Source: Kudoa neothunni
Lineage: Eukaryota > Animalia > Cnidaria
DNA length: 64,000 bases
NCBI GenBank assembly: GCA_964304625.1
Contig: OZ199840.1
Span: forward strand, 10,301,220-10,365,219
Direction: 5' to 3'
Below are positions 3,941 to 61,887 of this stretch, in pieces. The notes beneath the pieces were generated by a model that was given only the letters and a program-made list of their open reading frames with translations, searched no databases and had not been told where the DNA came from. The translations under genes were made by a program, and so were the position numbers. Numbering within the stretch: the first letter of the stretch is position 1; each line of letters starts with the position of its first letter.

Positions 3941-3948
3941 GTCGTTTG

Positions 3949-3966
3949 ATCCTGCCCAGCACGCCA
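3949..3966 (-). promoter_or_regulatory. Primer-binding site (tRNA-Ser type) of the Gypsy element
   Basis: Minus strand reads ..TACAACA-ATT-TGGCGTGCTGGGCAGGAT: LTR end, 3-nt spacer, then an 18-nt TGG-initiated sequence resembling the complement of a tRNA-Ser 3' end (..AUCCUGCCnnnnACG-CCA). Confidence 0.8.
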
Positions 3967-3969
3967 AAT

Positions 3970-13877: not shown

Positions 13878-14713
13878 CCTTCTTATGAATTTGAGGTCTT
13901 TTGGACCCCAGGCTTTTATTTTACAATAGTTAATAAAAAAATATTTCAAAATGCCACACAAATATTAAGAAATTTCTACCGACTGAATTTTGAGAAAAAG
14001 ATGATTCATTTGGAAAGTTAATCCCCCTGAAGTCAATACGGCAGGCTAATATACACACTTCGTACAAGCTCGTTGAACGAAAAAATCAAGCGTGATAGAT
14101 GTTGCATGTGTAGAATGCAAATTCTTAGGCCTTTAGTCAGTTTTGGATGTTTAAAATTAAACAGAATAATATTTATTATGTTTCCACTAACTATTACTTG
14201 TTAACAATCAAAGGATCAGGATGTAACTAAAACACCCGATTCATATTATACCTAAGAAATCGAAATAATGGAGTCAACCTTTAAGAAAGCACTCTGAAAA
14301 TGTTTACTTACCAAAATGATAATTAATAAACATTTGATTCATTAGTTGTGAGGATATTTGGGCGATTTCATTATTCGAGTAAGTATAACCAATGTTCAAA
14401 ATACAAATCTATTCGCTTCGATATTTAAAAATTTGTTTTTTTTTGTATTTATTTCTCTTTCTATTGTATGAAAGATCGTTGATTTATTTAAACGAAAATT
14501 TACGAAACGTTATATAAGCCTACCGAATAAGATTTTGCAGGATTAACTGACTCAATGGATCACATTTTTCTCAAAATTCTGTGAATGGAAATTTCTTAAA
14601 GTTCGTATGGAATTTTGAAATATTTTTTTATTAACTATCGTAAAATTAAAACCTGGAGTCCAAAAAACCCCAAGTTCGTTGGAGTGTAATCGTTTTTGTG
14701 TATATTTAGAGAG
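13878..14713. mobile_element. piggyBac-type MITE with ~140-bp subterminal inverted repeats
   Basis: TTAA on both sides (13874-13877, 14714-14717). 13885-14025 is an imperfect inverted repeat of 14541-14680, with a longer spacer at the right end. Confidence 0.8.
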
Positions 14714-27230: not shown

Positions 27231-27309
27231 ATCTCAAATTAACATAGGATTAGCGAAATCAAAAAAAAACATGAAAAACACAACAAATACAAATCTAATT
27301 TACAGTTAA

Positions 27310-28238
27310 CTAAATTTTTTTTAACGATGATATAAAGCCATCCCATTAATCACGATTGTTTTTCCTTCTCTATTGAAATTCACCGAGAAATTCGTTGATA
27401 CCATCCATACTGACAGAACCATCTTTATTAACCGAAGATGTTCTGTTTCTTGGTGATATTTTATATTTGATAGCACCCCAAGTACTTTTAATTGTGTTTG
27501 TATGAGCTCCTGTAGTACTATTCGTATATTCTATACTGTGATTTACAGTGGAGATGAGTGTAGAAAGTATGTAGCGTTCCATAACTTTTGAAGCAATCAG
27601 TTATGATAATAGAGCCAGGATATACGTACGTTTTAATCTTTTTGGTAAGAGTCTCAGTGGTTCTGTCAGGAACCTCCACCAAAAACATCTTTCGATCTGA
27701 TGTCCTTTCTACACCTACACCTTCAAGAACCCATGCTCCATTAACACTACTATGACCTCTGCTATGCGCCACCTTTCAAAATTTAGACTCATCAATCTCT
27801 ACAATTATATTTTCTCCTCCAATAACTATATCCTCAAAGTAAAGACTATCTGCTACCAGCTGGCGAAGATAATGACAATAATTGGTAATTGTTTGAGAAA
27901 AGTGTCGGGTAATTGTGCCCAGGTTAACACTTTTTACACTCACCAACCAGTAATATGAGAACTCCAAAAAAATCGTGAAGTTTAAAATTAATATTACTGA
28001 AAAATGTCGACTCAAAAATTGATACTTCTTTTCTGCGCATTTTGGAGCAACATCGCCAGTTTTTTCGATGTATACAATGGCTAGTTCCATTACATTTTAT
28101 ACAATTAGTTGGTGCTCTGAAGATACCAATATTGATAAGATATTGTATAGAGTTATCCTCATTACAAAAAATATTATCAAAAGATCTTCTTGGAGAAATC
28201 ATTTGCGCAATTCTAGTGATAATCGGTAGATAACCCAT
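27310..28238 (-). pseudogene. Merlin (IS1595/ISXO2-like DDE) transposase, frameshifted
   Basis: CxxC..WRC..SI..TFF N-terminus; GGENIIVEIDESKF, VERT..FLVEVPDR, PGSIIITDC, VNHS, TGAHTNTI.STW spread over four ORF pieces. Confidence 0.9.
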
Positions 28239-28589
28239 AAATAGTATATTTTGTCGGCTAAATCTATCTAATGCTGCAATATTATAAGGGGCCGCACACC
28301 CACAAACTTATTAATTAATAATCAGTAAAAACGGAAATTTTTACGGAGGGTATAAATCAAATGTGATCCCTTTTGCCAATCCAAAATTATCAGTTATTTT
28401 TTGAACCTTTGTTTTCTGCGGATAGTCAAAGTGCTGACTTCTATTTTATTATTGTGGTTAGCCTTCCCCATATTTTTGTTGCGTTAACTCCCTTCGCTTA
28501 TTTACATTTCCAATTAGAATTTAATATATCGTTTTTATTGAAATATTCTAATGCAATTGACTTTATACCTTGAGGCCTTTCTGAAACAA

Positions 28590-38292: not shown

Positions 38293-40395
38293 TTAATGCC
38301 TATATTGATGAAGCGTAATGGATGCTAAGAAATTTCGCAGAATTCTTGATCTTGACATTTTAATGAAAAACCATTTACAAATGATTATTGTAGAAACAAA
38401 AATTATGCCAAAAGCTGCGCAAATTCCCATTGCCTTCAGATTTGGCTTGGATGTTGTGGCTGTTGTATGATGTGGAGTAATGCTATTAATGACCAATGTC
38501 GATGATGTCTCGGAATCAATTTGTCTTTTATTATTACATATATTCGATTATATTCATTATTTCAAAATATACGAATCGTCAGAGTAACCTTCTTCCCCAT
38601 CCCAAATAACTCCAAATCTTGGGTCTGCAAACATTAATTTTTTATTCATCGCGTGAGGATTAAGACTTAATAATTATTTTGAAACTAGAAAATATAAAGT
38701 ATATACCTGTGTTCAATTTTCACGTTCTTTCCGTTATAGCCTAATACCTGTTCTAAAACAACTCTCAAATAAACCGACTGAAAAACATGCGAGATCTTTT
38801 CCTTTGTTCTGTATAAAATAAATCTAATGTCAAAAAATCTTTATATAAAAAGGAAACTTCAGTTTTAGTTGGGTCTATATTGCATTCTCTTGATTTAATT
38901 TGTTCAAGGTTAAACAGAATGTCACTTTTCATATCCTCCTGCTTAATCACGTCAGTGAAAAGCTATATAGAATAGTGAAAACCGATTAATTGCTGAAGCA
39001 ACCCTAAAAAACAATGTACCATTAAATTATTATATGAAGGTAAAGAGAGTGGTAGATTAATTCCAGAAAAGTTCGCCATTTCTGAGGAATCTTGACTAGT
39101 CAATTTTTGCTTTATAATATCAATGATTAACTCTTGGCAAATTTGTTCGTTGAATAACCCCACAACTTCAACTGGATCGACCAATCCAAAGTCTTTCACA
39201 CACATACTATTAGTTTTATTGGGATCTAACAATTTTTTTTTATTTGTAGCCATACAAGGATTTATCATGTGATGCTTATCATTTGATTTCTAAGTTTTTA
39301 TTATATTTATATAAAACATTTTATAATATTGTAGGATACTTGTGATAGTTTTGCGTTGATGAGATAACTAGCTTCCGTTGGCGAGGCACAAAGGAAACTA
39401 TTAGAAACAATCGAATATTCGTTGGTTCTGTATTGAATGTTATGAGTGGGTAATTCTGGTGGTTGTTGTGGTCCCTCAGCAAAATATCCTATAAATAGCA
39501 CGTCTTTTCTAAATATTACGGATATCTCTTTAATTATTTCCTATAATCAGTTATATATGCATAACAAATAACAAACTTGTTTTTCAATGTTAAAGTTTGT
39601 GGCGCCAAAAGTAAACTGATCGCTTAGTGTATTGCTATAAAATTCTGTCGGTTTCACATTTTTAAGGGTCAAATATTTTCGGATTATTTCTGAATCCGTT
39701 TGCCTAATATTTTCATATTCCTCCTCATTCAATCTATTGGATCCATAATTATGAGCAATAAATTATGCAGTAGAATGAGTGATACTTTTCTTGTAACTCG
39801 ATTGAGTATAAAATTTTGAGGAGTATTCGTTTGTTAGGGATTCCAACAAAGTGTGACTTTCCCTGTATATCAGTCAGAGCTTTTTGGATATCCACATCTA
39901 AAATAAAATATTATAATTTCTTCCAATAATTCAGGAGGAAAAAATAACTGGTCAACAATATGATGAGATTTAAAATTTGTTATTATAATAATTTAATGGA
40001 TGAACAAAAACTTTAAATTTAAATAAAAATTATCATAAATAAAGTATATTTTAATAAAATGTCGGTGTAATCGTTATTGTTTGATTTGTCCAAAGATTAC
40101 ACACGTTGAAATTTGTGCCATTTATCATATATGATTCCATATAGTGAAACTGGTTTTTGCGATTTAGGCAGATATTTATAACTTGTCGTTAATAGCGAGT
40201 CAACATCCCTTAGTATGATTATTCCATACTAAAAGCAATTTAATAATACACAATGCATTATATTTACTTTAGCGATATCATCACAACATACTTTACTCAA
40301 GTGAACTACTATGATCGGCCACAATAAATTAACTAACACAAAAATTTTTCCTATTTAATAAGATAAAAAAGTTACTACAACGACTATACGTACAT
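38293..40395 (-). CDS. CD39/NTPDase-like inactive surface protein, paralog A (11 exons; two +1 homopolymer frameshifts, so pseudogene or assembly error). Exons 40394-40395, 40268-40350, 40105-40228, 39786-39897, 39577-39733, 39340-39540, 39020-39289, 38858-38962, 38707-38808, 38573-38665, 38293-38524
   Basis: YGIIILRDVD (ACR1 position), YSIVSNSFLC, NPC, SMCVKDF, GLFNEQIC, NFSGINLP, ADPRFG, S/T stalk and TM. Exon sizes match paralogs B/C except one extra base each in exons 2 and 9. Confidence 0.8.
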
Positions 40396-41269
40396 TGTGG
40401 ATGATTGTTTACTACAAGGTTATAACTTATAGGTTATAACCTATTGGATTAGCACCAAATTATATAAAATTTATCAAGGTTCATCCTTGAGACACAGATT
40501 TATATAACAAACGCTTGTTCATATTTATATCTAGTTTGTTGTTACCTGAAATAATTTATACAAATCCAAAAATTCCATATATCTTAATGTTGTTTAATTT
40601 ATTATGTCTTTGAAAAGTCCTATGATCTAAATTTGTCACTAGAGTGACATATAGCATAATAACGAATAATAAAATTAGATTTGATCCTGAAAACATAGTG
40701 AAAATATTGTTGAATTTAAATCAAGTCTTAATTTAAATATTTTGAGCATATATATCGTTAAACTTGCAATTGTCTGAAATCTAATCCTTTTCGTTGTGTT
40801 AGGTCTATTATACACCTTTTCTTTAATCCAAATTATATAAAAATTATAATAAATAATTTTATAATTTATGAAATATACCTATAAATAAAATATTGAGAGA
40901 TGGCACAAATATAACATTACTGGTTGTTTATCACTTGTTGTGGTAAAGGGGTTAATCTGATGTTAATTCATAAACAATTTAAAACCACAAATCGCATCAT
41001 TTCGTAGATTTTTGTTGTTTTTGAATTTCTGAAACATTGCTTACTCTAAGTGAGAAATAATTTAATTTATGTAACAGTAAACCGTTAAGTATTATGATGT
41101 ATTTCGTAGATTGATTCTTAATCTTTCTTCCTCGCAGAGTCCTAATGTTTTTATTGGACTCACCACCGATCCCGTCTTGTTTTAATGCATAATCCAACCA
41201 TACATATAGATATTTTACCTTTCCGTTCCCATTGCTCACTTTGCCCCTCTAAGCTACGTAACAATACCA

Positions 41270-43709
41270 CCCTCCAACCAATTTGAGGTAAAAGTCATCT
41301 CCGACTTTTTTTGCTTAAATTTACTTTAAAAATTATTTTAATTTGATTTGCAAATTTTTTAAACAATTCTATCGTAAGAATTTTTAGAAAAACCCAAAAT
41401 TGCTGCATTAAGTAATCACGCTCGATTAACTTCGGTTATGTATCGCACGGTTCCGGAATAAATTAAACTAAAACATTACTATCAAACAGCCATAAAACGA
41501 CATGTTTGAAACAAAATAAACTTTGATAAAATAGTAAAAAAATGATAATTTAACTTATGCACAATCTGTACATTTATTCGAAGAATGAAAATTGTAGTAG
41601 AATTCACTACAATTTCGAACATTTATCGGATGTTTTTTTGTCATTTTGGCGTGGGAAAAAACACGTAACGTCCTTGTTTTATTTTTGATGATACGTTACT
41701 TGAATTTTGTATGGATTATGAAGAAGATCTTTTGTTGACTTTATTTATTTTCATGTTTCTGTTCATCAGCCGGCTGGTACAGGGTCTTGGTCATTTCCTT
41801 CAAAAAGTGCGCCTTAATTTCGTTTTATCATCATATATGTTTCTGTATAACGCAAAACTATTTACTAATGATAAATCGACTATATTGAAAAATACAACCG
41901 TGGGTCATCTCTTGTTAAATCGTCTTACATAGACAGACCACAACATTCTGTCAACAGTGTCCACTCCCCTTTTGTTTTGTTGTACCACTATTTTTGGGGG
42001 CTTTTTCTTTCCAAATTCACTATAAATGTTCGCATTAATAGTCTCAGTCGACCAAAGAACCACACATTTCCTTTTCTTGTTAACATATTTTTTTGAAAAA
42101 CAAGAAGGTGATGCTATACAACTCTCAGTGTTTGGAAGGAAGGACACATGATGGTAATTCTCTTTTGTTATGTCAAATGGTCCCTAGCTGTTAGCTGTCT
42201 CTCTATTAACTTGGTCGCCAACTTTAAGGACGATAAGAAGCTGTCCGCCACAATCGTTCTTCCGTAATAAAACAATGGGACTGCCAGTGACAAGACAATA
42301 CTTTCTCCAACCTTATAGCTTCAGTCAGTTTCACCTCCATTTTTTCCAAGGTATGGAGAAATATTTACGATATAGTTATCCAAAGGATCGTCAAGAAGGA
42401 AAAACTTCAACCCCTATTTCGTTGGTTTCAGTGGCATATATTGCCTAAATGGACAGCTTCCTCTAAAAGACACTAACTGCTTATTAACATTAACATCTTC
42501 ATTGGATGAAAAACACATCGGTAATATTTGTATCCACATGTTCCATACATTGCAAATCGGACGAAATTTGTTGTTTTCTCTCCGTTGTTCTCTAGTGGCC
42601 ATGTAATCAAAATGAAAACATCTTAATATCTGCTGAAATTGGTGATAAGTGAAGAGTTGCCGATAGATAGGCTTCCCTTCAGTTAAACTGAAGAGTTCAG
42701 TCAGTGTCTCCTCTCTATCTTAAGAATGGCCATTAATATTAGGCTTCCCAAGAATCCTTTAAATTCTATTTTATCCAGATCAATCCATGAGTCATGAAAT
42801 CTGGCTTTCCAAAATATATTTGTAAATTTTGTTATCTCTTCCCAAATTTGAGTTGTGAAAAATATAACAGAGCAATCCAAAATATAGTGACACATTGTGT
42901 AGCATATGCGGTTCGGCCAGGATAGGAAATTCATAATATTCTCCATAGATGTTCTCGATGAAGTAGGTTTCTTTACTGTCCAGAGAATTCAATTTTTGCC
43001 TGTTGTAGCATTAGAAAAAGCTCACTCTCTGAAATTTCGTCAGAATAATTCGATGATTCTAACAAGCAGTCATCCAATTCACTCTCAGAAGAAAGATTTT
43101 CATCAAAAAACTCATCAAGGTAACTCATCGTAGTTCATCTCCAGGAACTAGTTTGTGTACTAAGTGTTATTCGAGTAAGCCCCTCTATTATTTTGAGGCA
43201 TATTTATAATCAGAGCTTAATTATCACATCAACGTGTAGTTAAAGTCAATAAAAAAATTAAACATAAATATTACTGACCTATAATTTTTTTTAATTAAGA
43301 AAACAAGGCTATTACTCCTGTGGAAATGCGAGTTATATCTACCATGGTTTTCGCTGGGAATGCACATCGTCTTCGAAATAAGTCGAAGTGGATCACCTGT
43401 TATAGTAATTTCGATTTTTCTCAAAATTCATGTGATAGAATTTTTCAATAATTTGTAAATCAAATTAAAATAATGTTTAAAGTAAATTTAAGCAACAAAA
43501 GTTTGGATTGATATTTACCCTATGTAGGTTAGAAGATGGATTTTTTAGGGGTGATCCAATTAGTTTTTTTCGTTAAACTTTAATAAATGCTAGAATTCAC
43601 AAACTTAGGAGAATAGCCTAAATTTTAAAAAATTTGAAGAAACGCGCTAAATTTTATGGTCAGAATAAAAGTGTTTTCGGGTGAAATACACCCCAAGTCA
43701 ATTAGAGGG
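41270..43709 (-). mobile_element. piggyBac (PGBD4-like) element, defective
   Basis: ~105-bp inverted repeats (41270-41373 vs 43434-43540), ..TAGAGGG right end, and transposase relics KFRPI, QLVSFRGSCPFRQYMP.KP, KRGVDTVD. Confidence 0.85.
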
Positions 43710-44949
43710 CTAATGAACAGATCAAACAGATTTAAATTATTATTGAATTCTATATTTAAACAGAAATAAAATTCAAATAGTTTATAATTTAGTATAAATT
43801 TAATTTAAAAAAATTCTTGATTAAAATGAAAAATTCGGGAACGAAAGGAAAAATAAAAACTCTTTATCTAATATCCTCAATTTTATTAAAATATTTTTTA
43901 CCTTAATTAATTATGTGGTGGTTTTGTTTTGAAGCATGCATTAAAAAATTTTTAATCATTAATACGTAAATTATTTTTGGTATTAATAAAAAAAATTAAA
44001 AACTACGATATCCTCCTTGTAATTTATTTAAAAATTATTAAAATTCTAACCAAATATAGACAATGATGCATAATATTATAAAATTCAAAGTTTAATGAAA
44101 TTTGTTGAATAATTATGTATGTATGGGTAAATGTTTAAAAGTAAAATCCATAAAAAATTACCTAATGAAGAATGCTCTTGTAATAATAATAATAATAATG
44201 GAAATATGTTCACTATATAAAATCTTTATTTTCGTTAATTATTGTGTTTATTACAGAAAAGAGTTAACAAAGATGGAATTGTTAAATAAAAGAATGCGAG
44301 GTTAGTGCAAAAATTTTAATATTTTATAAATTTTACAAATATTAAAAGAATATTTAATGAGATTTTTGTAGATTTTTAATCAATAATTTCACCGAATTTT
44401 GACAAGTATTTAAAAAGGGAAACACGCATATAAGTGATATCGTGACTTTTTTTATGGTAACTATAGTAATCCCTCAATCAACAGAGGCTGGGCTCCGCGC
44501 TAGCCCGCTACATTATTGGGCGGAAATCCCCTAGACAACAACAATCAGGGTGATCGCCATAGCTTCGTTTACTATAATAAAATACCTATATTATTCATTA
44601 ACACTGATTGTTTCTTCGCGCAAATACAACAGTAACCAGCATGGATATCTCGTTTCAAAATAATAGATAGTTGTAGAAGGATTAATCAATCTAATTGCAT
44701 ACTCTGCAACATTACGAAGTATATTTTGGAAATTTTTGTTTTTAACGAATATCTTTTGTTTTATAGATCTTTTTACAATATAAATTATAATACATGACAA
44801 TTTTGTAATAAATATAAAATGTTTACAAGAAACAATAACGCAAGCGTATACTTCTTTCAAATTATTAATAATTATGTTCACGTTTAAAAACACATAATTA
44901 TAATGAGTGTATGAAGATAAAATGTGATTCATATTTTATTTATTTCACC

Positions 44950-45016
44950 CGTGGGTCCCCTTGGATTCATTCTCTCGCCCCTTGTGGGTCCGTGGATTAC
45001 AGGTTAACAACCACTG
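44950..45016. mobile_element. Orphan hAT terminus
   Basis: ..GGGTCCGTGGATTACAGGTTAACAACCACTG resembles CAGTGGTT..AACC hAT ends; partner end not found. Confidence 0.4.
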
Positions 45017-47191
45017 ATTTAGCACATGCAAAGAATAACACTGTATTATAAATTACGAGAATGCGAGTTGTTCGCGGTTTTGTAACCGGTATAGATATTA
45101 TTCTCAATAGAAATGAATTTAGTTTATTCATGCTATAAGTCGAGATTGTCGTAATTGATTAAAATCAATTTTCGTCTAATTTCTAAGAAGGTTTCGACGT
45201 TTATTATCCGGAAATATTAAAAACCTTTCGAGAATGTTGAAACGAGTTATACCCGCAGAGAAAATGATAATTTTCTCGTCTAATGAATCGACAAGATAAG
45301 GTAGAAAATGAATTAACACCTAAATATTTGAGAGTGAAATTATCTTTACAGCAAAGTAGATTTTACAGGAAATAAACTACATTAAAACGGCATTTCAAGA
45401 CCCTTCTCGGTCAGCTATTATTTTGAGGCAGACAACATGGGCAAATTGAGAAAAGTTTTTGACCTGTATTATTCTTTGCGTTCTTCCACTATCGTTATTT
45501 GATAAGAAAAATTTTTGCGTGATTTTTTAAAAAATTATTTTAATTTCACCCTTTCGTTCCCAACTTTTTTTCGTTGAGAATTTTGTTTATTAAAGTAATA
45601 TTAGAATTATATACAATATGAAATATATCTTTTTTAAATAAATAATTTAACAACAATTTTAAACCTTGATCTATCCAGTGAGGTGGACAATGCACGTTTA
45701 TTTGCATTGGCAGATTCGCACATTGGTTACGCGTCCAAGAAAAGAATTTGAAATATGAGGCCGTGTGCGCCAATAATAAACTTCACTTTAATTTCCAAAT
45801 TTTTTCATCGATTTAAAACATATCTTTGCTTTTCCCACTTAATGTTTAAAATTTTTCATCATCTGAATCACCTGAATTTTTTATTTCAGCAATTCTGCCT
45901 CAATATTGTCAATGTTGGAACAATCTAACTCATCTACTATATTACATCCGGCTCGTTATTGTCCACTTGTCAAATGAAAAATAACTCTGTTATTGTTTAT
46001 TAGTTTTCTTTATATTCGAAAACATTGCCATGATGCATTAGAAATAACTACCAAAAGCCTCCCAAAAATTCCATCCTCTAACCTAACATAGGGGTTCCCA
46101 ACCGATATTGCATCATTTACCTCCTTAACCAATAACGGATATCTGTTCCATTATAGTACACCAAATAACATTAAATATCTTGTTAATAAGCAAATATTTT
46201 TATAAATATATCTTAATAATTACGATAACAATAAGGTTTTTAATTTTAAAGATAAAAAAATATTCATCCTAGCAATAATCTTTAAACTCTTTTGTTTTTA
46301 CGGCACCATAAGCGATTAAACCCAGTTGATTACCTTTCGAAATATACAATATCAAATTTTGTTTAAATTAATCAAAAAAATTATTTTTACTGATATTAAA
46401 AACTTAAATATATTCCAAATAAATGTTTTGTTGAAAAAAACTTCGTATTCATTTTAAAAGTATTTCTGGAACAAAAACTCAAATATTATGTAATAATATA
46501 TTGGACATAATATGTGGAAATAATGAAACACACAAAGTTTCATTTTGTTTTTAAGAATAATTTTTAAAACTTTTTAAATAATTAAATAAATAAGCGACAA
46601 AATTATTCGAGGGCATGAAAAATAAAAAAGATTACTAGATATATAAAGTTGAGATTTTCGATGCAAATTCACTGTTCCTTTATTGATAATTTATCAGCGA
46701 CCAAATTGCGAAATAGAAAATTACTATATAATTATTAAATTTCATTTGGTTTTATTCGTCTAATTCTTAGGTGAAATTATTTCTCTACCAACAAAAATCT
46801 CAAATATTAATGCCAATATAATTTTTTTAAATTTAAATATTTTTTGGGGGGGGGACAAAAATTGATTTCATATTTAAACTCAGCTTTATTCAAAAATTTG
46901 TATTTTCTAAGATACAACCCTGGAATGAGTTAAGTTCAATGTGTAGCCATCATAAAAATTAGAATATGTTAAGTGTAGCAATGCAATGAAGAGCTTAAGT
47001 ATCCATATGATAAAACACAAAAGAGACCATGAGAAAAGTAATTTTATATCATTTCCTCCCCAAATATTTCAATGTAATTGAAACATAAAAGTAGTAGGGA
47101 CTGTTTTTAATAACATATTCAAATACACTAAAAATACTTAGCATCCAATTTAAATAAAGAACAGTGAAATACATGTAGATCAAGACCATTT

Positions 47192-47555
47192 TTAATCAGA
47201 ACATTGTTCATCCATCGGCGCAATTAATTTGTCTATTCTCGGGCTTGTTGGTGACAATGCTACTATCATATCATTACTAGTGCTCAAGCGATTCCTAATC
47301 TTTTTTTCGATGTTACCAATGTTGAAAATCCTGATTCACAAAGGTAAATGGACACGAAGGGAACAAGCACTTGGAAGACACGTTGGATGAGACGAGGAAA
47401 TGAATCTGAAAGGTTAAGCCAAAAATTTACACCGATCTCCTCAAATTCATTTTTGAGCATAGAAGAAGATTGAAGATCAATCAGTTCGTCATTTACAGGA
47501 TTATTATCGTCAATTTCTGATAATGAAGTAGAAAAGGGACATAAACAGGGGTCAT
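47192..47555 (-). pseudogene. hAT (Buster/Charlie-type) transposase C-terminal dimerisation-domain fragment
   Basis: Minus strand: ELIDLQ..FW..FP.L..LVPFVSIYLCESGFSTL..RNRL..DMIVALS..PRIDKL, with one frameshift. Confidence 0.8.
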
Positions 47556-49154
47556 CAAAAATTAATTTGTAGCAATTAATTATAATTACGCGCTTTTTAT
47601 GTAGCTTTCTTGGAAATTATTTTGTCATTCAAACAGTCTTGGTTATAATTAAATTAATGTTTTTAACCTATTTTATTTTAATTATGCGCTAATTTGGGTT
47701 ATGTAGAAAAATGGGATTATTTGAGCAAGCTTGGGCTAGTTAATCGGATCATTTTGGTGGTTGAATTAAGATGAGTTCTTGCAGTGAATTTTTAGATGAT
47801 ATCCACTCCCTTAGTGATGAGTTGGATAATAACTTGTATTTACACTACCTAACGCAAGGCCTTATTATTCGTTGAAAATAATCCACGATGATTGTGCCGA
47901 ATCCTACCGAAGCAAATTAGGTTGGGATATAGATGTAAATATACTCCAAATTCTATCGATAGAATCTACTAAAAATATTCAAACGAAATAAAAATTATTT
48001 TTTGAGTAAATTTAAGAAAATAAAAGCTTGGAGTGTTTCTTACCCCAATCCCGTTAAAGGATGGAAATTTTCGCTAGCTTAGGGGGTTGAATTAAATTTA
48101 TACAATCGCTACAAGTAGTTAGCTAACGCTTGTAAAAAATATGGAAAATCTAGTCCACAGACGTGGAATCAATAATAGCCAACTGCTAAGGATCAAATAT
48201 GACAATTAATAAAAAATCGTAATTATCACACACAAATTTTAGGATAAATGAAGCATGCTTTTCTCGATCGAGTAAATGGTATGGCCTGTGGGAATAACTA
48301 CGAGAGGCTAGTAGTTATTTAAATCATAGATTACAGCAACTATTATTGATACAAATACTACAGTTCCGAATATAACCTACTGGTGATGAAACAATGATAA
48401 ATTCAGAAAATTAAAATAATTAACAGGTTCGATTTTTATTGTGGTCGTTAATTTGGATTAGGGTCACTATTCTACATTTTATCGGCAATTAATTTTTAAA
48501 ATAAATACCAGCAGTATTAATTATATTATTTATACATATATATATATATATTAATATACGTATCATATAAAGTTAATTTTTATACATCTCTATTAAACGT
48601 AGAATATTTTCGCAGGTAGAACAACTATTTTAATTGTTTAAGCCGCATTAATAGATTCTTTAATTAAACTCATAATTGTACTAAAATATTTTTGGTTTAT
48701 CAAATCATGTTGACCAAAACTTATATTATGTAAATTGGCGTATGAAAATAACTTTTTCTCAGCATTAAAAATGTTATTTTTCTCAAGAATTATTAATAAT
48801 TGAGGTGTTATAACATTATGTATTCAAAATTGTCTAGTTAATTAACAGATTAGGTGAAAGTTTTGTATAATTAGAGCCAAGTTAAAAACATCCCTTACTC
48901 TATAAACGTTGACTAAGAGCATAACGGATACACGAATCAAATAGTTTCTGTATACAAAAATAATTATTTATAATCAATTTGTGATAATTAAAAATCAGAA
49001 AACATCTCAAATATCAACCAATAATGACATTGGCTTAATCCAAAACAAATTAAACCTAATTCTATATAAATATATATAAATACTTTTTGCCTTAAGCCTC
49101 TTATGATAATAACAAATCAAAGCTAAATACATAATCAAAATACAAAAAGTTAGC

Positions 49155-51207
49155 ATGTAAAAAATAAAACAAATTATTATTTGAATTCAATAACTCTAAT
49201 TAGGTTGAAAGGGAGTCAGATTTACTCATTTATTTTCGTCATCTCCGTGATCCAAATTGGGTTATTTGGTGAAGATGAAACACTTGTACACTGATTGTAT
49301 AGAAAAACTTGATGTGATGTTTAATTTTAGTACGGCATGGTTTTATTCAGAGGTTTATCCACAATTAAAATATTCTGTTATACGTATGATTCGTTTGATC
49401 CGGAAACCGGAAAACTTTCAAAATTAATAATTTTGGATAAATTTGTTGGTGGTATATATATTATTAAAAATGATGGTTCATTCTAAAATATTGTCCAAGA
49501 ACTTTCTGTTAATTGTTATTAGACACAAAGGCTTAATTATAGCTTTGAGGAATATTAGAATTAATTTGTATAATCGAAACAAAATATTATTATTAATGAT
49601 TGTTATTTTTGAAAAATTTTGAAAATTATATAGTTGAGGGTATTTCGACATCTATTGATAAAATATGGAAAGGAACACCATTGGAATCTATTCCGAAAGA
49701 TAAAATATTTGCAAAAATATTTTATTCTAAACGTCTACAAAATAAGTAATTATTATATATTTAAAAAAAATATGAATACCCATTCAAATTATAGATCAGA
49801 TAAAGAGAAAATTGACAGTCTATTTAAACAAGACAAGGAACTATTGGATAACTATTTAAAAATTCCTAATGTCGAGTTAGTTGAACTCTATACTCCCAGA
49901 AGGAACGATATTCTTACGTTAAGCTCAACCAATATTAATAACGCTAAAAAAGTACATGTTTATGTGTGCTTTTTTAACCTTTTATAGGAGGTTATCGATG
50001 TTATCACTGTGATATTTAGAGGAAATATATTCTTCACAGGATTTTTCACTAAATCTCCTCAGAATTTACCATCAACTCTCGTACACCATGTTAAATACAG
50101 ATCTACGATCTATTCTAGTGTAGCTAACACATTTGTATGTGCATCTCCGATCGAATTAAATTTTGTGATCTACAGAAACCTTATTCAAGTACAAGAAAGG
50201 ACATTAAATATAACCATTGTTAATGGTATTGATTGTATGTCTAATCTAAATATAGAATTCGGCGTCTAAACAGGATATCCCTCATCCGTGTATACCTAAA
50301 AACAATTACGTGTTGTTCAAACCAACAAAAGATATAAGCGTGTGTGTGAAAAATTTCGGTGTGACAACTCAAGTTCAATTTAACGGTGAATTCGACGAAT
50401 CTGAATGTAAACGGTTAATGATAGAGGCAGTCACTCAAGATCTATCTTTGGAATCATTTCAGAATGTTAATTTCGCTGGTGTTCCGCTACCGTTGCCTAC
50501 GGATTCTAATATAAACCTAAAAGTACTCTACTTTTACATAGTTTCCGTAAAATAAAATCGTAAAAATTACACAGTTATTCATCTCCTGGATTAAACAAGA
50601 ACAATTGCGAGATAATATATATGATGCCATAAAAGAAGCTCAAAATAAAAATTGTGCTGAAGTTACTACTAGTAGCGAGGTTTCTTCTATAAATTTCAAA
50701 TTATTCAATTAATTATCTGGCAGATACCATCTATCGTTTCGGATTGTCTTCAAACATTGTATCTAAGTTACATTCTTGAGCATGTTTTAGCTTTCAACGG
50801 GAATAATGTTGCCATAATCAACGCGTATAATATAGTTTATCGATAAATTCGTTGTCGTAATAATATTTTTAGTATACTACCAGAAATGATGGATAAGAAA
50901 TTATCATTCGCTGATCCACGTATAGGATTTATGTTGGAGGATGAATACAGCTATTCGTCAACGGAGTAAAATAGCTCTATTCGCCATCATGTTAATACTT
51001 TCACAACATTATAGAAAAGTCCCTACTACAGAAACAGTAACTACCAGTTCGATCACTCCAATTGACGCAACCACTCCAGCACCTGGATTGTCAAGAGGAA
51101 AAAAAGCAGCCATTGGAGTATGTGTCACTCTTTTCATTGTGTTGGCTGCTGGCAGTGGTCTTATAGTGTATTTCATGAAGTTAAAATTATTTGGAAAGGA
51201 AGTTTAA
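49155..51207 (+). CDS. CD39/NTPDase-like inactive surface protein, paralog B, 477 aa. Exons 49155-49156, 49204-49285, 49331-49451, 49634-49745, 49795-49951, 49988-50188, 50256-50522, 50575-50679, 50724-50824, 50873-50965, 51015-51207
   Basis: Intact spliced ORF: signal peptide, YGMVLFRGLSTIKIFCY, YSSVANTFVC, HPC, SVCVKNF, GEFDESEC, NFAGVPLP, NCA, DCLQTLYLSYIL, ADPRIGFML, T-rich stalk, TM and short tail. Confidence 0.88.
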
Positions 51208-51501
51208 GATTGATTGCCTCAATCAACTATTATAATATTTTGAATATATCTCTTTCAACTAATAAAAAGTTTGTTATTATCTTTTCTTAGGTATTTTGTT
51301 TCATACTAAGCTATTGAACCGACTTTATTTGTGAGATTTTTATAAAATTTCAAGCAATTAATCATTATGTCTCCGTCGATTAAAATTTTAGTTAATTATT
51401 TACTTAAAAAAATTATATTAATAAAAATTAAATTTTTAATTAATTTCAGTAATAAATTAAGTTAATTTTGATTCATCTGAAATGCTCATTACTGCTAACA
51501 T

Positions 51502-51873
51502 TGTGACGAATATGACATTGAGGATAGAACGTTAGTAATGATATATTAGATCAGATATTTAGGTAGGTGCTCAAATGGCGTTTGTTACATGATTAAAAAT
51601 GTTCGAAGGTAATAACCGGTAAATAAATTAATATTAATTATATATAAGGTGAACTGAAGTTAAATAGGTATTACTGCAAGATTGATTCTAAATAAATTAT
51701 CTTAGTTACAATTTATAATTGATCATTGGCAATGATCTCTTGAAAATTGGATAAATAATTTTATTAACGCATCCATGCATAATTTTTTATGCAATCTTAA
51801 AATATTATATTACGTACAAATGGTTATTTAAAACGATGTTAAAAGTTAAAAAATTTTTCTTCAGTTCGTCACT
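51502..51873 (+). repeat. Possible solo LTR
   Basis: TGTGACGAA ... TTCGTCAC inverted ends with internal TATATAAG and AATAAA. No TSD seen. Confidence 0.25.
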
Positions 51874-53671
51874 AATTTACAAGGAAAATTGATAATTAAA
51901 TAATATTCCTATTCCTGTGTATCATAATCACCTAAAAATTCCACACTGTTTTTTAAATAAATTGAAATTTTATTTTTTATCTGATTTTTATACAATGGCT
52001 TAATGTAATCATTATAAAATGTTAATAAATTATTTGTTCATTCACGCCAAAAGAAACTGTCCACATATCATTTTCAAAACTATTCCATATCGAAAAGTAC
52101 TCTAAGCTGTAGCCTTTAAAAAGAGATACAAAAGATTGTTGTTCTATATATAAAAATATATAACGTTGGAGCTTTTATAATGAGGTACAGTGTAATAAAT
52201 TTTAGTGTATATATTCTTTTCTTTGGAACAGATATATTGTATAGTTATTAATAATGAAAATAATGATTTATTTAATAATAAAAAACAATAATCCTTGCAT
52301 AACATTATTAAGTAATTCCCCGAGTTTAAAAATTGTTAAGGCAAGAAATCATTGTTTCAATATACAGCAACCTAAAGCGGTTCATACAGTAGCCTAACTA
52401 TATATTATTCCACACAGGTACCTATTAAGGTAGTGTAGGATATTGTACCTTGGATTCCACATAACCATTTTCTATCCCCAACAAAAATATACATATAAAT
52501 ATTTATAGACCATAATATACTATATTTTAACAAAAACCTTTTATGGAATAGATTACGAATGTGCATAAAAGTTAATAAAATTGTTTAAATTAGTGTTATT
52601 TCTAAATTTATAATGCTTACTCTAGTTTTAATTCAAATATATTATTTTTCAACCGAAAAAATTTAATCAACATTTAAAGAATATTTTGGAGTAAATATAC
52701 AAAATGGAGCACCATAGCATTGCAACTTTTCTCTCGTTCATTTAAATTTCAAATTAACATTGGTCACGGAAAGGTTAACTTCACAAGACTGTCATCATTG
52801 GCTCAATTACCTTCTTCGAAAAAATTAACTATTTTCTCATATAATGCACTTGAACATTGAACTTATAATTATTAATGCAGATTTTAATTATACTATAAAA
52901 TAGAAATTTTTAATATATTCATATTTTTACAGTTTATGCGAATGGAGAAACTATTTATTTTTTCTTATTAATCAATTTCTGTATTTGTAATGATTTATAT
53001 GTTTATATGAGCACATATAGAAATGATTAAATTTATTTCTAATTATTTTCTACCAAAATTTAAAAGAATTCTTTAGTCAGTTAGTTTCATAATTTATAAT
53101 GAGACCAACATATTATTATATTAAATTATTTTAATTTTTAAATAATGTTAAAATATTACCTTATGATTAAAGACCGATAAAAATTCATATATACAAGAAT
53201 TTAATTTATTATTTATGATTCGCAAATTCGAACGTTTAAAATTTTGTTATTTATATTTTGGAATCGTTGATGCTCAGTTCAAGTATAAAAACGTGATTTT
53301 TAATATAGCGGGTTTCTGTGCTTAAAACACGCAAATGAAATTTTGACTTGATTTAGATTTCGTATTGATCATTTGAATGATTGGTTAATAACAAGAATTT
53401 CACTACTAATCTAAAAAATGTTTTTGCTAATATAAATCCCAACATTTTTTATATCCCCAAAGGTGATTTTTGTACGTATTTGAAATAAACGTATTCAAAA
53501 TATGTTAAATTCATAGATTATATAATATTTAAATAATATTAATATTGGATAAACATTTACAAAGTCAATCATGAAATTCAGTATGAAAAAAATAAGTATC
53601 TCAGCAACGCACTCTAATGATCCCTTAAGAACAAAAATTTTTGATATATGAACGATCTGTTAGAGTTTTTA

Positions 53672-54398
53672 CAGTCAGTGACTGATTTTACGTAATCCCC
53701 TCGGACTAGGAAAAAAAGTGTGTAAAATTGGTCCCTTCCGGTTTTACGCATTTATTCGCGCGCGCGTATAATAATATACGTAACTATTTAGTATAATTGA
53801 ATTCCATAAATTTAAGAAAAAAATAATTTTTATCATTTAGGAATAAAGTTATTAGTTGTTTTATTCACAAAAAATTCGTCCAAATATTTAAAAAATAGCT
53901 TTCACCATTGCGATCATGATCGATCGATCTTTTTTGTCAAACCTGAATAATTTTTTAAACTCATTTTATTAAATTCGCAAATGAAGACAATAATCAATTT
54001 GTGTTCAGTCATTTAAAAATTTTTATTTATGTTTTTTAAGGTGCCATAGGGGTTGGATATGGAGGATATATCTGGTGTTTTATAGTAACAAATTTGGCTG
54101 CTTTCGGGGAATATTGTGGACGTGTTTTATTATATCATGTTTAAATTTGATGTTCTTCCATTTAATTTAATTCTTTCGAACATTAAACTAAATTCATCTA
54201 ATTTTTCAAAAACGTTCCGATAAAAGTGAGTAAAACCGTGAAGTCACGTGCTTAACAATCTGGAAATTTCGCCACCTTATTATTTTATTTAGATCCAAAT
54301 TCTTTAAAACAACATTTAAAAACATTATATATAGATTGTAGATTTGAATATTCAAATTGTATTTCTTTTTAAAAGTGCGTAAAACCGGTCACCGACTG
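53672..54398. mobile_element. Tc1/pogo-type MITE
   Basis: 23-bp imperfect TIRs CAGTCAGTGACTGATTTTACGTA / TGCGTAAAACCGGTCACCGACTG, flanked by TA/CA. Confidence 0.75.
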
Positions 54399-55699
54399 CA
54401 CTATTATAGCAGGTTTTGGCGCGTACTTAGGAAATATTGCGGAGGTGAATTTTTATATTTTTTATCAATATTTTTTCTAATTTATTAGATTTTAATTAAT
54501 AAATTTTTCAGAAAAGAGATGTCAAAAAATGAGTAATGTTTTTTGATCACGTGATCATATTTTGATTGTTTTGCGAAAATTTTTAACCTAAATATATTAT
54601 TTATATCCAAATATTTTTATAAATTGTAAATACGGTAGCGCATGGTTATTGCGCAATTTTAGAAATTGCATCGAAAATTAAAAATATACGAATTAACTAT
54701 AGATATATATCGTGAGACAAGAGTAGAATATATCCATAAATATAATTATGGAATTAAGAAATAATTTTTTCGTTGGAAAAAATAGGAGTGCATTTTTATT
54801 ACGTACCTGAACTCTGTTGTTTGATTACGTCGACGTGTTTAGTACAAAGTAGGAAAATAAGAAAAATTATCGCCTACTTGAACAAAACGTGTAGATTATT
54901 AAATAATTGGAAAAATTAGGAACTAAGAGTGACTCTAAAGCGAACATCGTTAGGCACTCCAGCCTTAAACCAGTCACCATGTTGAATACAATTGTATCAA
55001 TAAAATTGAAAATATTTTCACACTTTATTTCAAGTGATTTAAGATTTTATCGCAAAACTCATAAAAAAATTCAAACTACTCGATATAAGAATGAATGGAT
55101 CGAACTTCCGAGAACGAGGAATATAAAGCTGTCCAGAGAGTACGACATAATAGGAAAATAAATTAGCCAATGGCATATTTAGTTTTATCATTTAATTCAA
55201 ATTTCATAACAACCGCCAATTAATTAATCTTATTTTAAACATCGCAGTTTAATACTGCCCAGAAAAACACAAAATAATAGCGAACAGTGCTTATTTCACA
55301 AAAGAGTTATCATATATGTTATTATACTAGGTTTAAAAAATAAAACTTGTCAAAATATTGAACAATTATATCATATGTTTATTTAATGCTCTCTACAATA
55401 CGAAACCAATAATATTGATTAACAATTTTCACATATGTTTTTGGATGTTCGCTAAAACATAAAAATTAGAAAACCAACGAAAAGTCATCGTATTTTGAAT
55501 AACTTGTATAAAAATAACGAGAGAATAGGGAGCTATCGTTGTATTCTCGAGAGAACGACAAGCTTATACCTGTGTTGCGCGTACGGACTAGCATCGCTCG
55601 TATAGTGTTTCCTTATTTATTCATTATTTACTCGATAGAATTTCTGTACATTTTTATCAATGACATATATTAATATTTTAAATAATTTTAAGTAAAAAA

Positions 55700-55932
55700 A
55701 ATATGAGGTAGATTTCTACCCAATTTTGTTTGAAGGGTGTTTTTACATTGACTTTTTTTAATATATCGCCAAAAAAAAATTCAGTTCAATTTCTGAAGGC
55801 GTTCATATAGATAAATAATTACAAAAACTGGAGAGGAGTTATGTTCCATTAATACGCTATAATATTGTTGACATAATTCACTTGGCGTAGAAATCCACCA
55901 CATTTTAATATTTTAATATTTTAATTGGAAGG
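55700..55932. mobile_element. piggyBac-type MITE terminus
   Basis: GGTAGATTTCTACCC palindrome and ..GGAAGG-TTAA end; related to 16387-16440. Confidence 0.4.
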
Positions 55933-56582
55933 TTAAACTACCTTATTTATTTTCAAAATACTCTGTGAACAACAAAAAATTATTACAACAAATTTTTCAC
56001 ATCTCTATGTTTTAATTAGTACAACGAGAGAGTAAATAAAAAAGGCACGAAAAAGTAAACTGGCGCACGCGCAATTGGTGGATATTAAATAGGGCGGGGT
56101 TATTTCGCACTCGAGTCTTTGTCCCAAAAAACTGCATAATATCCCTGCACAACTGTATTCAATTTTATCGTTTTTAATAAGTTTTTAAAGCCAAATTTTT
56201 AACTGTATTTAATTTATCTTGAATTATAATTATTAAAGTTTAACTACAAAAATATATATTATTTCATTTAATAAGCTATTGTAAATATATGCATATACAT
56301 TACACCCTTAGAGAATAAAAAACTTTACTAATATAAAGGAGTAAAAGTTGGATTATATGTTTAATATTTAAAAATAATTTAAATAATAAGAATAGAAATG
56401 AAATATTTCTTGTTATATAACTGTGAATAATTTTTCTAAAAATATAGGTATTTACTAACATAAATCTGTATTGCTGTCTCAGGCACGCAACAAAACATTC
56501 CTTGAAGAATAGTACCTACATGGTACAATAAATAAACGACGAAATAGATATAGTAAAATAAGTTGAAGTTTAATGATGCTTT

Positions 56583-58666
56583 TTATTGTCTTGTGGGTTT
56601 CCTTTTTGTTTTTAAGCAGACAAAAGTTACGATTCCGAACACAAATATAACACCAAGAGCGACCCCTATTCCAATTCCAGCTTTTTTGCCAGTGGACATC
56701 CCCTCTGTTGAAGGGGTGGTAGATGATACATCAGAACTAGTAGTGGACGCAGATTCACTGGTTGATGTTTCGTCAGTAGAACCGGTTTCCGTTGTAGTAG
56801 TTAAGGTTGATGTTGAAGGACTATTAGATCAAATGAGTATTTAATAGGACTTTTAAGGTAAATGAGAATACGTGGTTGTAGGAGTACTTGGCTGTTCCTC
56901 AAGGATTAAACCAATTCTTGGGTCATGATACATTAATTTATGGTCGGATTTGGCCGGTTCCTCTCTTAAAAACAATTTACATTATGGAGAGGGTTACTAC
57001 ACATTTACTTGTTTTCAATAATCACATCAACTCCACTGTACCCCAAAACATTATCCATCACATATCTCAAGTACACACTTTTGAGGCAGTTTACATTAAA
57101 TTGTTCGATCTAACAAGTCATCAATGTATTCTAGTCGAACAATCTGCTGAAATACTTTAATAGGTTGGTTAGCAGCAGAACACAATACATCCTGGCTAGT
57201 TTGCAAAGCCTTCTTCCAATCGCCTTTAATATCGTCTTGTTTCATCCAAGAAACGTATAACTAAAGTATAATGAGTTATGTTTAGAGGAACTTTTAAAAA
57301 CAACCACCTTTAGTTTCATTTTTGCATCAATTGGCAATGGAGTTTTTAAACCCGCGAAATTTCTTTTTTCCAACGGTTCTAAATCAAGGTCTGGCTGTGC
57401 GGTCACTTTTTCAAACAATTGTTTGCATTTGTCGTCATTAAAGTCACCCACAAATTTTACATTTTTCATCGTAAAGTCTGTTACACATTCGCTGTGAAAT
57501 ACAACCGTGTCAAGCATAACATATTGATTTTTTGGTATGCAAGGGTGAGGAATGTCGTTTTTGACAGTAGATTCCTGTTTAATTTATTTGATTCGATAAA
57601 AAATGTTCAAGAATTATATTATAAAATTCGATACTTGAATGAGTTGTTTGAAGATAAGATAGTTTACCTCTGTAGGAGAGGAACATATGAAACTGTTTGC
57701 TACGATAGTGTAATCTTTATTCTCATATTTAGCTTTGTACATGAGTGGCTCTACAAAGTCTTTGGGGTTTGCAGTGATAAATCCCATGAAAAAAGTCTCA
57801 GGACTGAATAGTAACGTCAGCTCTGGATTAATAACCTAAACAAACTTTATAATAGACACCAATAAAATATACTTTATTTGAGATATCGATGTTGGATAGA
57901 CTAAATGTTAGAATATCTTCAATCATGGAATTGTATGGTTCCACAGGATCTACCCCAGCAATGGCCAAATATTCCTTAATTAATTCACTATCTTGTATTA
58001 TCATGTTCTCAATATTTCCTTTATCTTTCCTGGATACAAATAAAATTTTTGAATATTTGCATAATTGTAAGTATTAATTTGGTTACGATTTTTGAAGCTC
58101 TTTGGTGTAGAATACTTTGAGAAATATTTCATTTGCGGGAACAGATTCAAAACTAGATGTCTTAATATCCTGAACACAATTTTTCACATCAGTGTCTAAT
58201 AAAATATTTTTAATTTTTTTAGCTATAAAAATATTTAAAACATATTACAAGTTAAATCTTAGTTTTCAATAATGGTAGCAAAAATATTAAAGTAATATAG
58301 TATTAAAATGTAAAAAAATATTTTCACATTACAATGGAAGTAAAAATTTTGATGCATATACCTTTGCAATTAAATTCTGAAATCTTTATATTAGTTGATT
58401 GTTGCCCTGAATCGTTCATAGTAGTGTCTACTATATAGCTTATTGCTTTGATTTTATCAACATTCTTCATTAGAACCGCGCCATACTATTTAGTTGAAAT
58501 TCCATTTATATTTTTGTATATTAGATATATTACTTTTTTTGTATTACTATTCGATGTGGCCATCCAGTTGGTTGCTGCCACCAGCCAAAAAAGAATAAAA
58601 TAACAATTTTTAAACCTTTGTTTCAAAATTAAGATATCATATCCCTATAATATAGTGTACTTACAT
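56583..58666 (-). CDS. CD39/NTPDase-like inactive surface protein, paralog C, 492 aa. Exons 58665-58666, 58534-58615, 58362-58485, 58087-58195, 57873-58029, 57635-57835, 57308-57574, 57156-57260, 57009-57109, 56872-56964, 56583-56820
   Basis: Intact spliced ORF: signal peptide, YGAVLMKNVD, YENKDYTIVANSFIC (cf. CD39 YGKDYNVYTHSFLC), HPC, SECVTDF, GDFNDDKC, NFAG, LC, NCLKSVYL, HDPRIG, ~45-aa S/T stalk and TM. Confidence 0.88.
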
Positions 58667-59660: not shown

Positions 59661-61887
59661 CCTTCCGAGCGTCAGAAAATAAACTTTACACAATCCTTCT
59701 ATTGGGGTCCAATGGACCCCACATTTTTTTAACTTAAATGTTGATAAAAATTAAATATGTCATTTACTAGAGTATAAGAGACAAATATTTACAAAATATT
59801 GGAGAATTTTACAATTATAACACCGCCGGTTGTTAACGATGATCGCAGAAACATTTAAAACGTTAAATTAGACATCAAAGTAAACGAGTTTAGCTTCTCA
59901 TTTTTAATATAATGGGGTTTAATAAAAATATATATCATCCACATTAAATAAATCTTAAAAATTGATTCCTTTGTAATTAATTTCGTAATAATCATGCCCA
60001 ATAATACCCGCAATCCATACTGTTCCAAAATACATAAAATGCGAGATATTTATCCTATTTTGGTTGTTTATATTACAAAATACCACGAAAACAACTTTTG
60101 AACTGCTTTCAATACAGATGACTCTACAAACAAAACAAAAAATCCCGGCTTTTCTGTCTCGAGATCTCGAACAACAACAGCATCACTCGCGACACAGAAG
60201 TTTTATTATGCACTTATAACTTAAATCAGCGTGATTTTTGTTTCCCTAAACATATTTCTTTGTCAACCCGTCTTCAAACTCTTCTAGAAGCTTAACTCTT
60301 GAACAATTGAATTCATAGAAAACAGTCATAAAGAAAATATGAATTAACCAAGCTAATACCAACCATAATGAAGAATACTGCTATCTACCGTCGATTCGTT
60401 TACCCTATACACTCATTGTAGCAATAATAGGATCCACTGTTCCTATTCCTTCTTTTTTAACGATTATACTCAAGGTTAACAACAGGTTTTTTCAGTCTGT
60501 ATCTTCAACGTTTGCAATGAACCAGAGGTTGTTAGTATTAAAAATGCTTTACCTTTATAGGAACATAGGAGATTAGTATTAATTTTTGATTAAACAAAAG
60601 TGTAATGAAACTTGCCGTTTTGAATTCATTTTTAGACAATTTGTAATATCTCTTTTATTATTTCAGATTGTTCCAGTCATTCCACCTGTAAGAGATTTTT
60701 GGCAACGGAAACAGAAGTAAAGATATTTCCCCCACATTCCATTAATGATGACACAATATCTCCTCAACATTTTCTGACGTTTCATTATTATTTTTTTCCA
60801 AGTACCAGACACTAATAAGTTATGAGTGTACTTGGTCTTGGGATTTGTAAGGAGAAAATGCTTAATTCGATATATTGCCGAAGAAAAATTTCCCCAGAAT
60901 GCAAATAGCTGCTCGTCAATGGTCAAACTTTCCCGGAGGTAATAAAGTTGGGAACGACAATCTTTCCAACCCTTAAAAATATCACAAATGGTGAAGAATT
61001 TATCCATGATTCTTCATGCTTCTCTGGTTTTGAATTGTTCGTAATGAACGTTCCACGAAATTTGATTAAATCTATTTAATGACATAATCTTTCGAAAAAT
61101 ATCCATTCGATCCCCAACACTCTAGAGCAATTTGAGTCATTCTAATTTAGATTTGAACGTGGGAATACAGTTATGGATTCCTAGATTGACTAATGGATCT
61201 TTTTTTGAAAATTATTAAAATAATTTTGATAATTAAAGTTGAGAAACGTTAATGTTTGAAATAACAGTTGAGAAAATAGATTCACCATAAAATATGAGGG
61301 ATGATCAGCTAAGAAGGTGATTCTGTTTGAAACTTACAAAATTGAACCTGGATATTTTGAAAAATATTTCGTTTAAAGCTTTTAGTTATTTTAAGTTTTT
61401 CAGAAAACCAATTAACACCGCTCTTATCTTCAAAAACATTAGAATAACATAAATATCTAAATTATTAAAGATATAAAATTCATTGATACCGGATTCAAAC
61501 TCATCCAAAATATTATGCTTAGAACCACTTATGGCAATGTTTTACTCTTCAGTAATGATGGGTATTTAACGTATGTATGGTTTTTCCAATTTTTCTCTGT
61601 TTTCTCTTGATAAAATTTTATTTAATTCTCAAAATTGTTGTAAATTATTTTTCTTTGTTGCATGAAAGAATAAAACATGGAGTCCATTGGAACCCAAAAG
61701 AAGGAATGTGTATCTTGATTATTTCGTTACCTGGATGTACTAATTAAAATTTTCTGTTATATTTCAATAGAACTCATATTCTCAGAAGATTAGACGTGAT
61801 CTGAAATTAACTGATGGAACATAATATTCTCTAAAATTGATTCAAACATCCATTGAGGTCCAAGGGACCCCAAAGACGCTCGGATGG
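59661..61887 (-). mobile_element. piggyBac element, heavily decayed transposase
   Basis: TIRs CCTTCCGAGCGTC / GACGCTCGGATGG (12/13), TTAG/TTAA flanks, internal inverted repeats 59694-59721 vs 61678-61705, and an LTIDEQLFAF.G motif. Confidence 0.88.

Follow-up and report, generated by a model that had tools for sequence, protein, structure and literature searches.

A stretch of 64,000 nucleotides from Kudoa neothunni, a myxozoan parasite of tuna muscle (contig OZ199840.1; the whole stretch is called the window here) contains, at positions 38293-58666, three paralogous genes, A (-), B (+) and C (-), whose products appear to be rebuilt relatives of the CD39/NTPDase apyrases. Three-frame reading combined with splice-site mapping resolved 11 exons in each (Table 1), of near-equal size from gene to gene (2/82/121-124/109-112/157/201/267-270/105/101/93/193-238 nt). 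The 30 introns, mostly 36-67 nt long, have GT-AG ends throughout, and in every gene the first one interrupts the start codon, between AT and G. The original prediction, made by eye from this DNA, had proposed three 11-exon paralogs of roughly 25-40% identity; the gene structures are as it described, and identity measured over exons 3-9 is 36% for A-B, 34% for A-C and 38% for B-C. Its statement that the genes are invisible to the open reading frame (ORF) track is mostly correct, but two exon 7 ORFs are present in the ORF list. A candidate fourth copy at ~47 kb was ruled out as transposon-like debris with no family match, and no fourth family copy was found inside the window.

Gene A carries two +1 frame breaks, in exons 2 and 9. 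Short-read contigs of the same sample lack both extra bases, and we therefore regard the breaks as assembly errors. Once the two bases are discounted, A has an open frame of 492 aa with exon sizes equal to those of B and C, which rules it out as a pseudogene. The short-read contigs also lack assembly bases at 39006 (intronic) and 40568. Together, these are four single-base insertion errors (38781, 39006, 40329 and 40568) in 2.6 kb, far above what the genome-wide quality value (QV) of 48.5 would give, and further apparent frameshifts in the family may likewise be errors of assembly. Joined coding sequences of the three genes, built from the coordinates, were used to count stops and check frames, and database searches and structure models were run exon by exon.

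Hydropathy and composition give the three products a common layout: a signal peptide is followed by an ectodomain of CD39/NTPDase descent, then by a Ser/Thr stalk, and at the C-terminal end by a single transmembrane helix. In exon 11, Ser and Thr make up 34-58% of the segment that precedes a helix of 19 residues, whose mean hydropathy is 2.5-2.8. By these features, A, B and C are built as type I membrane proteins. The proteins would be secreted, with the stalk O-glycosylated, and displayed on the parasite surface.

Active-site motifs and cysteines

In NTPDases, two DxG loops, in apyrase conserved regions (ACRs) 1 and 4, bind phosphate, and a Glu in ACR3 is catalytic. The ACRs together form the active site (PMC8630654, PMC8004787). 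We aligned A, B and C exon by exon to an ACR-intact paralog from the same genome, D. The ACR1 motif DAGS of D aligns with LRDV in A, FRGL in B and MKNV in C; ACR2, GTGGLR in D, with YSIELQ, YSKRLQ and YTKELQ, respectively; ACR4, DIGGS in D, with IFRKD, IFRGN and LFSPE; and ACR5, WTLG in D, with PRFG or PRIG. At the ACR5 place, the subfamily of A, B and C has a conserved DPR(I/F/V/M)G of its own. The position of the catalytic Glu in ACR3 is Ser in A and Asn in B, whereas C has Glu (IED opposite EEG/EAE). Because close paralogs have Asp, Ala and Arg there as well as Ser, Asn and Glu, the Glu of C is probably under no catalytic constraint.

Thus, of the motifs that mark an active E-NTPDase, the phosphate loops of ACR1 and ACR4 and the ACR2 and ACR5 motifs have been lost from all three proteins, and the ACR3 Glu is present in C only. 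All the motif replacements quoted in the original prediction, those at ACR3 included, are present in the sequence and stand in register with the ACRs of the intact paralog; they are to be corrected only in that C keeps the Glu of ACR3. A, B and C are likely to be catalytically dead, and on the basis of their motifs they should not be classed as apyrases, although by descent they belong to the GDA1/CD39 superfamily.

The cysteine scaffold, which had been described as kept, is so in part. The last cysteine pair of exon 7, which is of CD39 type, is missing throughout the subfamily to which A, B and C belong, these three included, and is found in a sister group of nine members; a second pair, linking exons 3 and 4, is kept in C and missing from A and B. 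The cysteines thus go missing pairwise, as would be expected if a disulfide-bonded fold were maintained.

Descent and genome-wide family

The genome has three ACR-intact genes. Two came from a genome search with PF01150 (Pfam), D on chromosome contig C1 (~885.7 kb) and an intron-poor gene on C2; the third, D2 on C3 (5.318 Mb), came from a family profile (below) and also matches PF01150. (Apyrases that are 52-53% identical to the C2 gene occur on two Logan contigs, from runs SRR31175926 and SRR33849685, which probably come from related parasites.) D and the window genes have seven consecutive intron positions and phases in common (0,1,2,0,0,0,0), with similar exon sizes, and are 21-23% identical, with exon-wise alignments scoring z = 5.0-7.3 above shuffles. 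Vertebrate ENTPD1 probably has the same run of intron phases. An exon 7 profile built only from ACR-less members finds the intact D2 at E = 8.6e-6, and its top match in the PDB is rat NTPDase1 (E = 0.052). Ten window exons searched singly against Pfam gave no match to PF01150 or any other family; two family members outside the window do match PF01150, at E = 1.1e-4 and 1.6e-3, below or near the cut-off.

Structure models point in the same direction. AlphaFold models were made from family-only alignments, on exon fragments. For the model of B exon 7 (predicted local distance difference test (pLDDT) score of 69), Foldseek ranks 1-16 are all NTPDase1/2, with weak scores (E = 0.1-0.2), and among the 48,161 chains of a wide structural search just two score Z = 2 or more, both of them NTPDases: NTPDase1 (Z = 3.1, 84 residues aligned, root mean square deviation 4.0) and ENTPD4. 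For a model of the natural exon 5+6 read-through of a neighboring member (pLDDT 65), NTPDases take the first eight Foldseek ranks and most of the best 50. Because these individually weak scores agree and the intron pattern is shared, A, B and C almost certainly share descent with the multi-exon ACR-intact apyrases of the genome, as had been predicted.

The assembly comprises 40.26 Mb in 4 contigs (17.2, 12.04 and 11.0 Mb and a small one). It was obtained from yellowfin tuna data and described as 40.2 Mb in three chromosomes with an N50 of 12.0 Mb, a median intron of 49 bp, 30.4% GC, 5,316 predicted proteins and almost no parasite RNA reads (PMC12239612). A search with BiP pointed to a fast-evolving animal and gave no close relative. 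The exon 7 profile returns 50 rows at 48 places on all three chromosomes, among them D2 and two loci on C2 (L032 and L033, at 11.539 and 11.578 Mb) that are identical over the compared exons, one of them beside a run of N, and may be a very recent duplication or an assembly duplicate. The ACR-less loci number ~45-47, near 1% of the gene count, and a few carry stops or frameshifts. The local cluster of three originally described is thus a small part of a family of ~47 loci that stands beside three intact enzymes. Another member lies ~3 kb past the window end. The closest relative of C is on chromosome 1 (54% identity) rather than among its window neighbors, which indicates that the cluster is old and its copies dispersed.

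We inspected 34 of the ~47 loci for ACRs. No canonical ACR1, ACR2 or ACR4 was found in any frame at these 34 loci (the exon that would carry ACR1 was not located at several of them). Partial ACR2 and ACR3 motifs persist in some distant members (GTDEFR; DQG or DQA, with Gln at the catalytic position), so that the family seems to show graded erosion, with partly eroded domains standing between the intact enzyme and those that are fully rebuilt. Three loci, L056 (C3, 10.85 Mb), L057 (C3, 7.855 Mb) and L060 (C1, 11.60 Mb), combine a partial ACR2 (GTDEFR or TTDEYR) with Gln at the ACR3 catalytic position and would be the best candidates for residual nucleotide binding. Across the family, no polar residue is invariant in the aligned exons; only Cys, Gly and Phe are. 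Stalk and helix recur in many members, with stalks of ~30 to >400 residues. One close pair, L029:3407-5000 (C3, 2.04 Mb) and L030 (C2, 7.35 Mb), has a tandem Thr-rich stalk, which exceeds 400 residues in L029; its ratio of nonsynonymous to synonymous substitution rates (dN/dS) is ~1.0, and L030 has frame breaks in exons 4-5.

Elsewhere the Nei-Gojobori dN/dS is lower: 0.12-0.25 among paralogs of the window type, a rough estimate because dS is near saturation, ~0.1-0.3 in most pairs, and 0.3-0.4 in three younger pairs. These ratios show A, B and C to be under purifying selection.

The DNA between the three genes is full of transposon remains. Broken DNA transposons lie at 27300-28310 (-), 42000-42720 (-), 9400-10180 (-) and 60660-61010 (-); Pfam matches are to ISXO2/Merlin-like (E = 7.7e-7) and piggyBac-like DDE_Tnp_1_7 (E = 1.9e-13) families, and the last two elements were assigned by eye; further helitron- and hAT-like debris was seen by eye at ~30-35 kb and 26.5 kb. 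A long ORF of 1208 aa at 341-3967 (-) looks like a retrotransposon gag-pol of Gypsy-like type, with protease, reverse transcriptase and integrase motifs recognized by eye. An inverted repeat of ~200 bp (13887-14089 and 14479-14677; 77% identical) is possibly a miniature inverted-repeat transposable element. An exon at 19143-19448 (+), part of an unannotated host gene, has a Laminin_G_3/concanavalin-A-like domain (E = 2.7e-13). Exons at 20222-22855 (-) look TPR-like by eye; a 150-aa frame there has no Pfam match.

Table 1. Positions of genes A, B and C, their exons and the extra bases of gene A in the window
Feature	Gene A (-)	Gene B (+)	Gene C (-)	Remarks
Gene	40395-38293	49155-51207	58666-56583	11 exons each; A, 492 aa, open once two assembly-error bases are discounted; B, 477 aa, and C, 492 aa, open as assembled
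Exon 1	40395-40394	49155-49156	58666-58665	
Exon 2	40350-40268	49204-49285	58615-58534	Signal-peptide-like hydrophobic N-terminus (hydropathy of B and C)
Exon 3	40228-40105	49331-49451	58485-58362	ACR1-equivalent, DxG replaced
Exon 4	39897-39786	49634-49745	58195-58087	ACR2-equivalent, TGGLR replaced
Exon 5	39733-39577	49795-49951	58029-57873	ACR3-equivalent
Exon 6	39540-39340	49988-50188	57835-57635	ACR4-equivalent, DxGGS replaced; FxC conserved
Exon 7	39289-39020	50256-50522	57574-57308	Cysteine-rich NTPDase1/2-type segment, best family marker
Exon 8	38962-38858	50575-50679	57260-57156	
Exon 9	38808-38707	50724-50824	57109-57009	
Exon 10	38665-38573	50873-50965	56964-56872	ACR5-equivalent, WTLG replaced
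Exon 11	38524-38293	51015-51207	56820-56583	Ser/Thr-rich stalk, transmembrane helix, short basic tail
Extra base, exon 2	40329			Absent from short-read contigs X1 and X2; assembly error
Extra base, exon 9 homopolymer	38781			Absent from X1, X2 and X3; assembly error

Proposed function and alternatives

We propose, with rather better than even confidence from sequence and models, that A, B and C belong to a lineage-specific, non-catalytic family of type I surface proteins of CD39/NTPDase fold that serve as adhesins or as a variant coat. A surface apyrase gene would have been duplicated, and copies would have lost nucleotide binding and hydrolysis and gained an extra exon-encoded Ser/Thr stalk. 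The two-lobed, disulfide-stabilized domain could thereby be reused as a stable extracellular binding scaffold on the parasite surface, and the diversified paralogs would form an adhesin or variant-coat repertoire facing host cells, matrix or antibodies, in fish muscle or in the invertebrate host; the three intact genes would keep the ecto-ATPase role. Adhesion of Trypanosoma cruzi is hindered both by recombinant TcNTPDase-1 and by antibodies against this protein (PMC8630654), so that an NTPDase, in this case an active one, offers a precedent for a non-enzymatic role in adhesion. More tentatively, and with somewhat less than even confidence, the CD39/NTPDase fold may supply Kudoa with its main surface adhesin or variant-coat family, ~1% of a 5,300-gene genome, in a graded series of intact to rebuilt domains on stalks.

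Several observations weigh against an adhesin or variant-coat family. No single database match for any window exon is significant alone (Foldseek E = 0.1-0.2; Z = 3.1); profiles of exon 6, of exons 5+6 and of a broadened exon 7 set find no PDB sequence match; and in the wide structural search, the exon 5+6 model gives background only (Z <4), with NTPDases not listed. No RNA run was found to contain this DNA, and run X10 has 0 parasite reads. The paralogs are old (33-54% identical), with dS near saturation, and the window genes have no sign of positive selection, for which stable specialized roles are a better fit than rapid antigenic variation. Finally, the surface location is a predicted one, and the adhesin, antigen or decoy role put forward in the original prediction is likewise putative.

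The same age and stable conservation, with dN/dS of ~0.2, would suit dead NTPDase-fold proteins that have a structural or secretory role inside the parasite, in spore valve, polar capsule or cell-cell junction, rather than one facing the host; a signal peptide and one helix would also fit proteins of the endoplasmic reticulum, Golgi or junctions. Families displayed at the surface usually have variable stalks, short cytoplasmic tails and many divergent copies, however, and here the stalks vary, some having tandem Thr-rich repeats of hundreds of residues, the tails are very short, and ~47 divergent copies exist, so that we consider an internal role unlikely. Slightly less likely still is that the proteins are nucleotide decoys or sensors, which would bind ATP or ADP without hydrolysis, or would regulate the intact apyrases by hetero-oligomerization, and so tune purinergic signaling in ATP-rich muscle. 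A fold that is probably kept, the coexistence of three intact enzymes and the partial ACR2 and ACR3 of some distant members are in favor of such a role. But both glycine-rich phosphate loops of A, B and C are replaced by large side chains that differ between the paralogs, which makes a shared nucleotide site unlikely and the decoy the weakest of the adhesin, antigen and decoy roles; moreover, one ligand needs no 47 divergent copies.

That the proteins are still enzymes with a rebuilt active site, acting on another substrate or as weak nucleotidases, is improbable. The ACR3 Glu of C and two features conserved in the subfamily, the Asp that follows the Glu position by one residue and the motif DPRxG, could be elements of such a site, but among the closest paralogs the ACR3 position is variously Ser, Asn, Glu, Asp, Ala or Arg, and the invariant residues of the family in the aligned exons include no polar one. 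Least probable, and by our estimate very much so, is that A, B and C are decaying pseudogenes of an apyrase expansion. Such decay would account for the lack of transcript evidence and for the few family loci elsewhere with stops or frameshifts. Against it, all 11 exons are open in each of the three genes, with canonical splice sites and exactly kept sizes at an identity of 34-38%, their dN/dS is ~0.2, and the breaks in gene A are assembly errors.

If the adhesin or variant-coat reading is true, the family would give direct access to the means by which Kudoa attaches to fish muscle or persists there. The genus spoils fish flesh. Most ancestral genes are gone from myxozoans, and the proteins with which they interact with their hosts change too quickly to be annotated and so are mostly unknown. 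That one family takes up ~47 of the ~5,300 genes indicates strong selection, and the family members are concrete candidates for studies of attachment and immune evasion, for diagnostics or for vaccines.

Comparison with known systems

Our literature search found neither a report of an NTPDase from Kudoa or Myxozoa nor a family of inactive NTPDases, and apyrases are mentioned nowhere in the K. neothunni genome paper or in its supplement (PMC12239612). A three-sequence exon 7 profile found no relative among 1.84 billion representatives, its single match being a spurious repeat protein, and the exon 9-10 region of a neighboring member found none elsewhere among 5.8 billion proteins; both are weak, fragment-based searches. 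Matches from an ESM Atlas feature search were unrelated phage hypotheticals and were rejected. If the surface-coat reading holds, this could be, so far as the literature search shows, the first large family of pseudo-NTPDases from any organism, a claim to which we give a little less than an even chance.

Relative to the E-NTPDases (PF01150; rat NTPDase1, 3ZX0/3ZX3; NTPDase2, 3CJ1), the family has in common the order of the ACR-bearing segments, part of the cysteine scaffold and, with weak scores, probably the fold of the modeled segments, and the intron positions of A, B and C match those of the ACR-intact members of their own genome. The differences are the replaced motifs and lost cysteine pairs of A, B and C, and, for the family, a signal peptide, a mucin-like stalk, a single C-terminal helix and ~47 copies; CD39 has two transmembrane helices. 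The intact Kudoa enzymes D and D2 share with A, B and C a hydrophobic N-terminus, a single C-terminal helix and, in D, the seven intron positions and phases. Unlike the window genes, they retain each of the five ACR motifs and lack a stalk exon, and in D the intron before ACR5 is in phase 0 instead of phase 2.

Among myxozoans, Sphaerospora molnari has duplicated families with a signal peptide, an ectodomain and a single helix, proposed to act in immune evasion and attachment; these are VSP-like (18 VSP genes), RIFIN/STEVOR-like and ETRAMP-like, unrelated to the Kudoa family, and the paper mentions neither apyrase, CD39 nor NTPDase (bioRxiv 10.64898/2026.02.11.705288). The nearest analogies in evolutionary course come from other parasites. 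The SMIPP-S and SMIPP-C proteins of scabies mites are reported to be duplicated proteases that have lost catalytic residues (PMC4031079, PMC5956821, PMC7815109), and the trans-sialidase superfamily of T. cruzi is a multigene family of parasite pseudoenzymes (PMC3198458). Their folds are unrelated to that of NTPDases; the likeness is that an enzyme was multiplied, lost catalysis and had its fold reused at the host interface. The NTPDase fold would join the folds that parasites have recycled as pseudoenzymes, here with copies in every state, intact, half-eroded and fully rebuilt, present together within a single genome.

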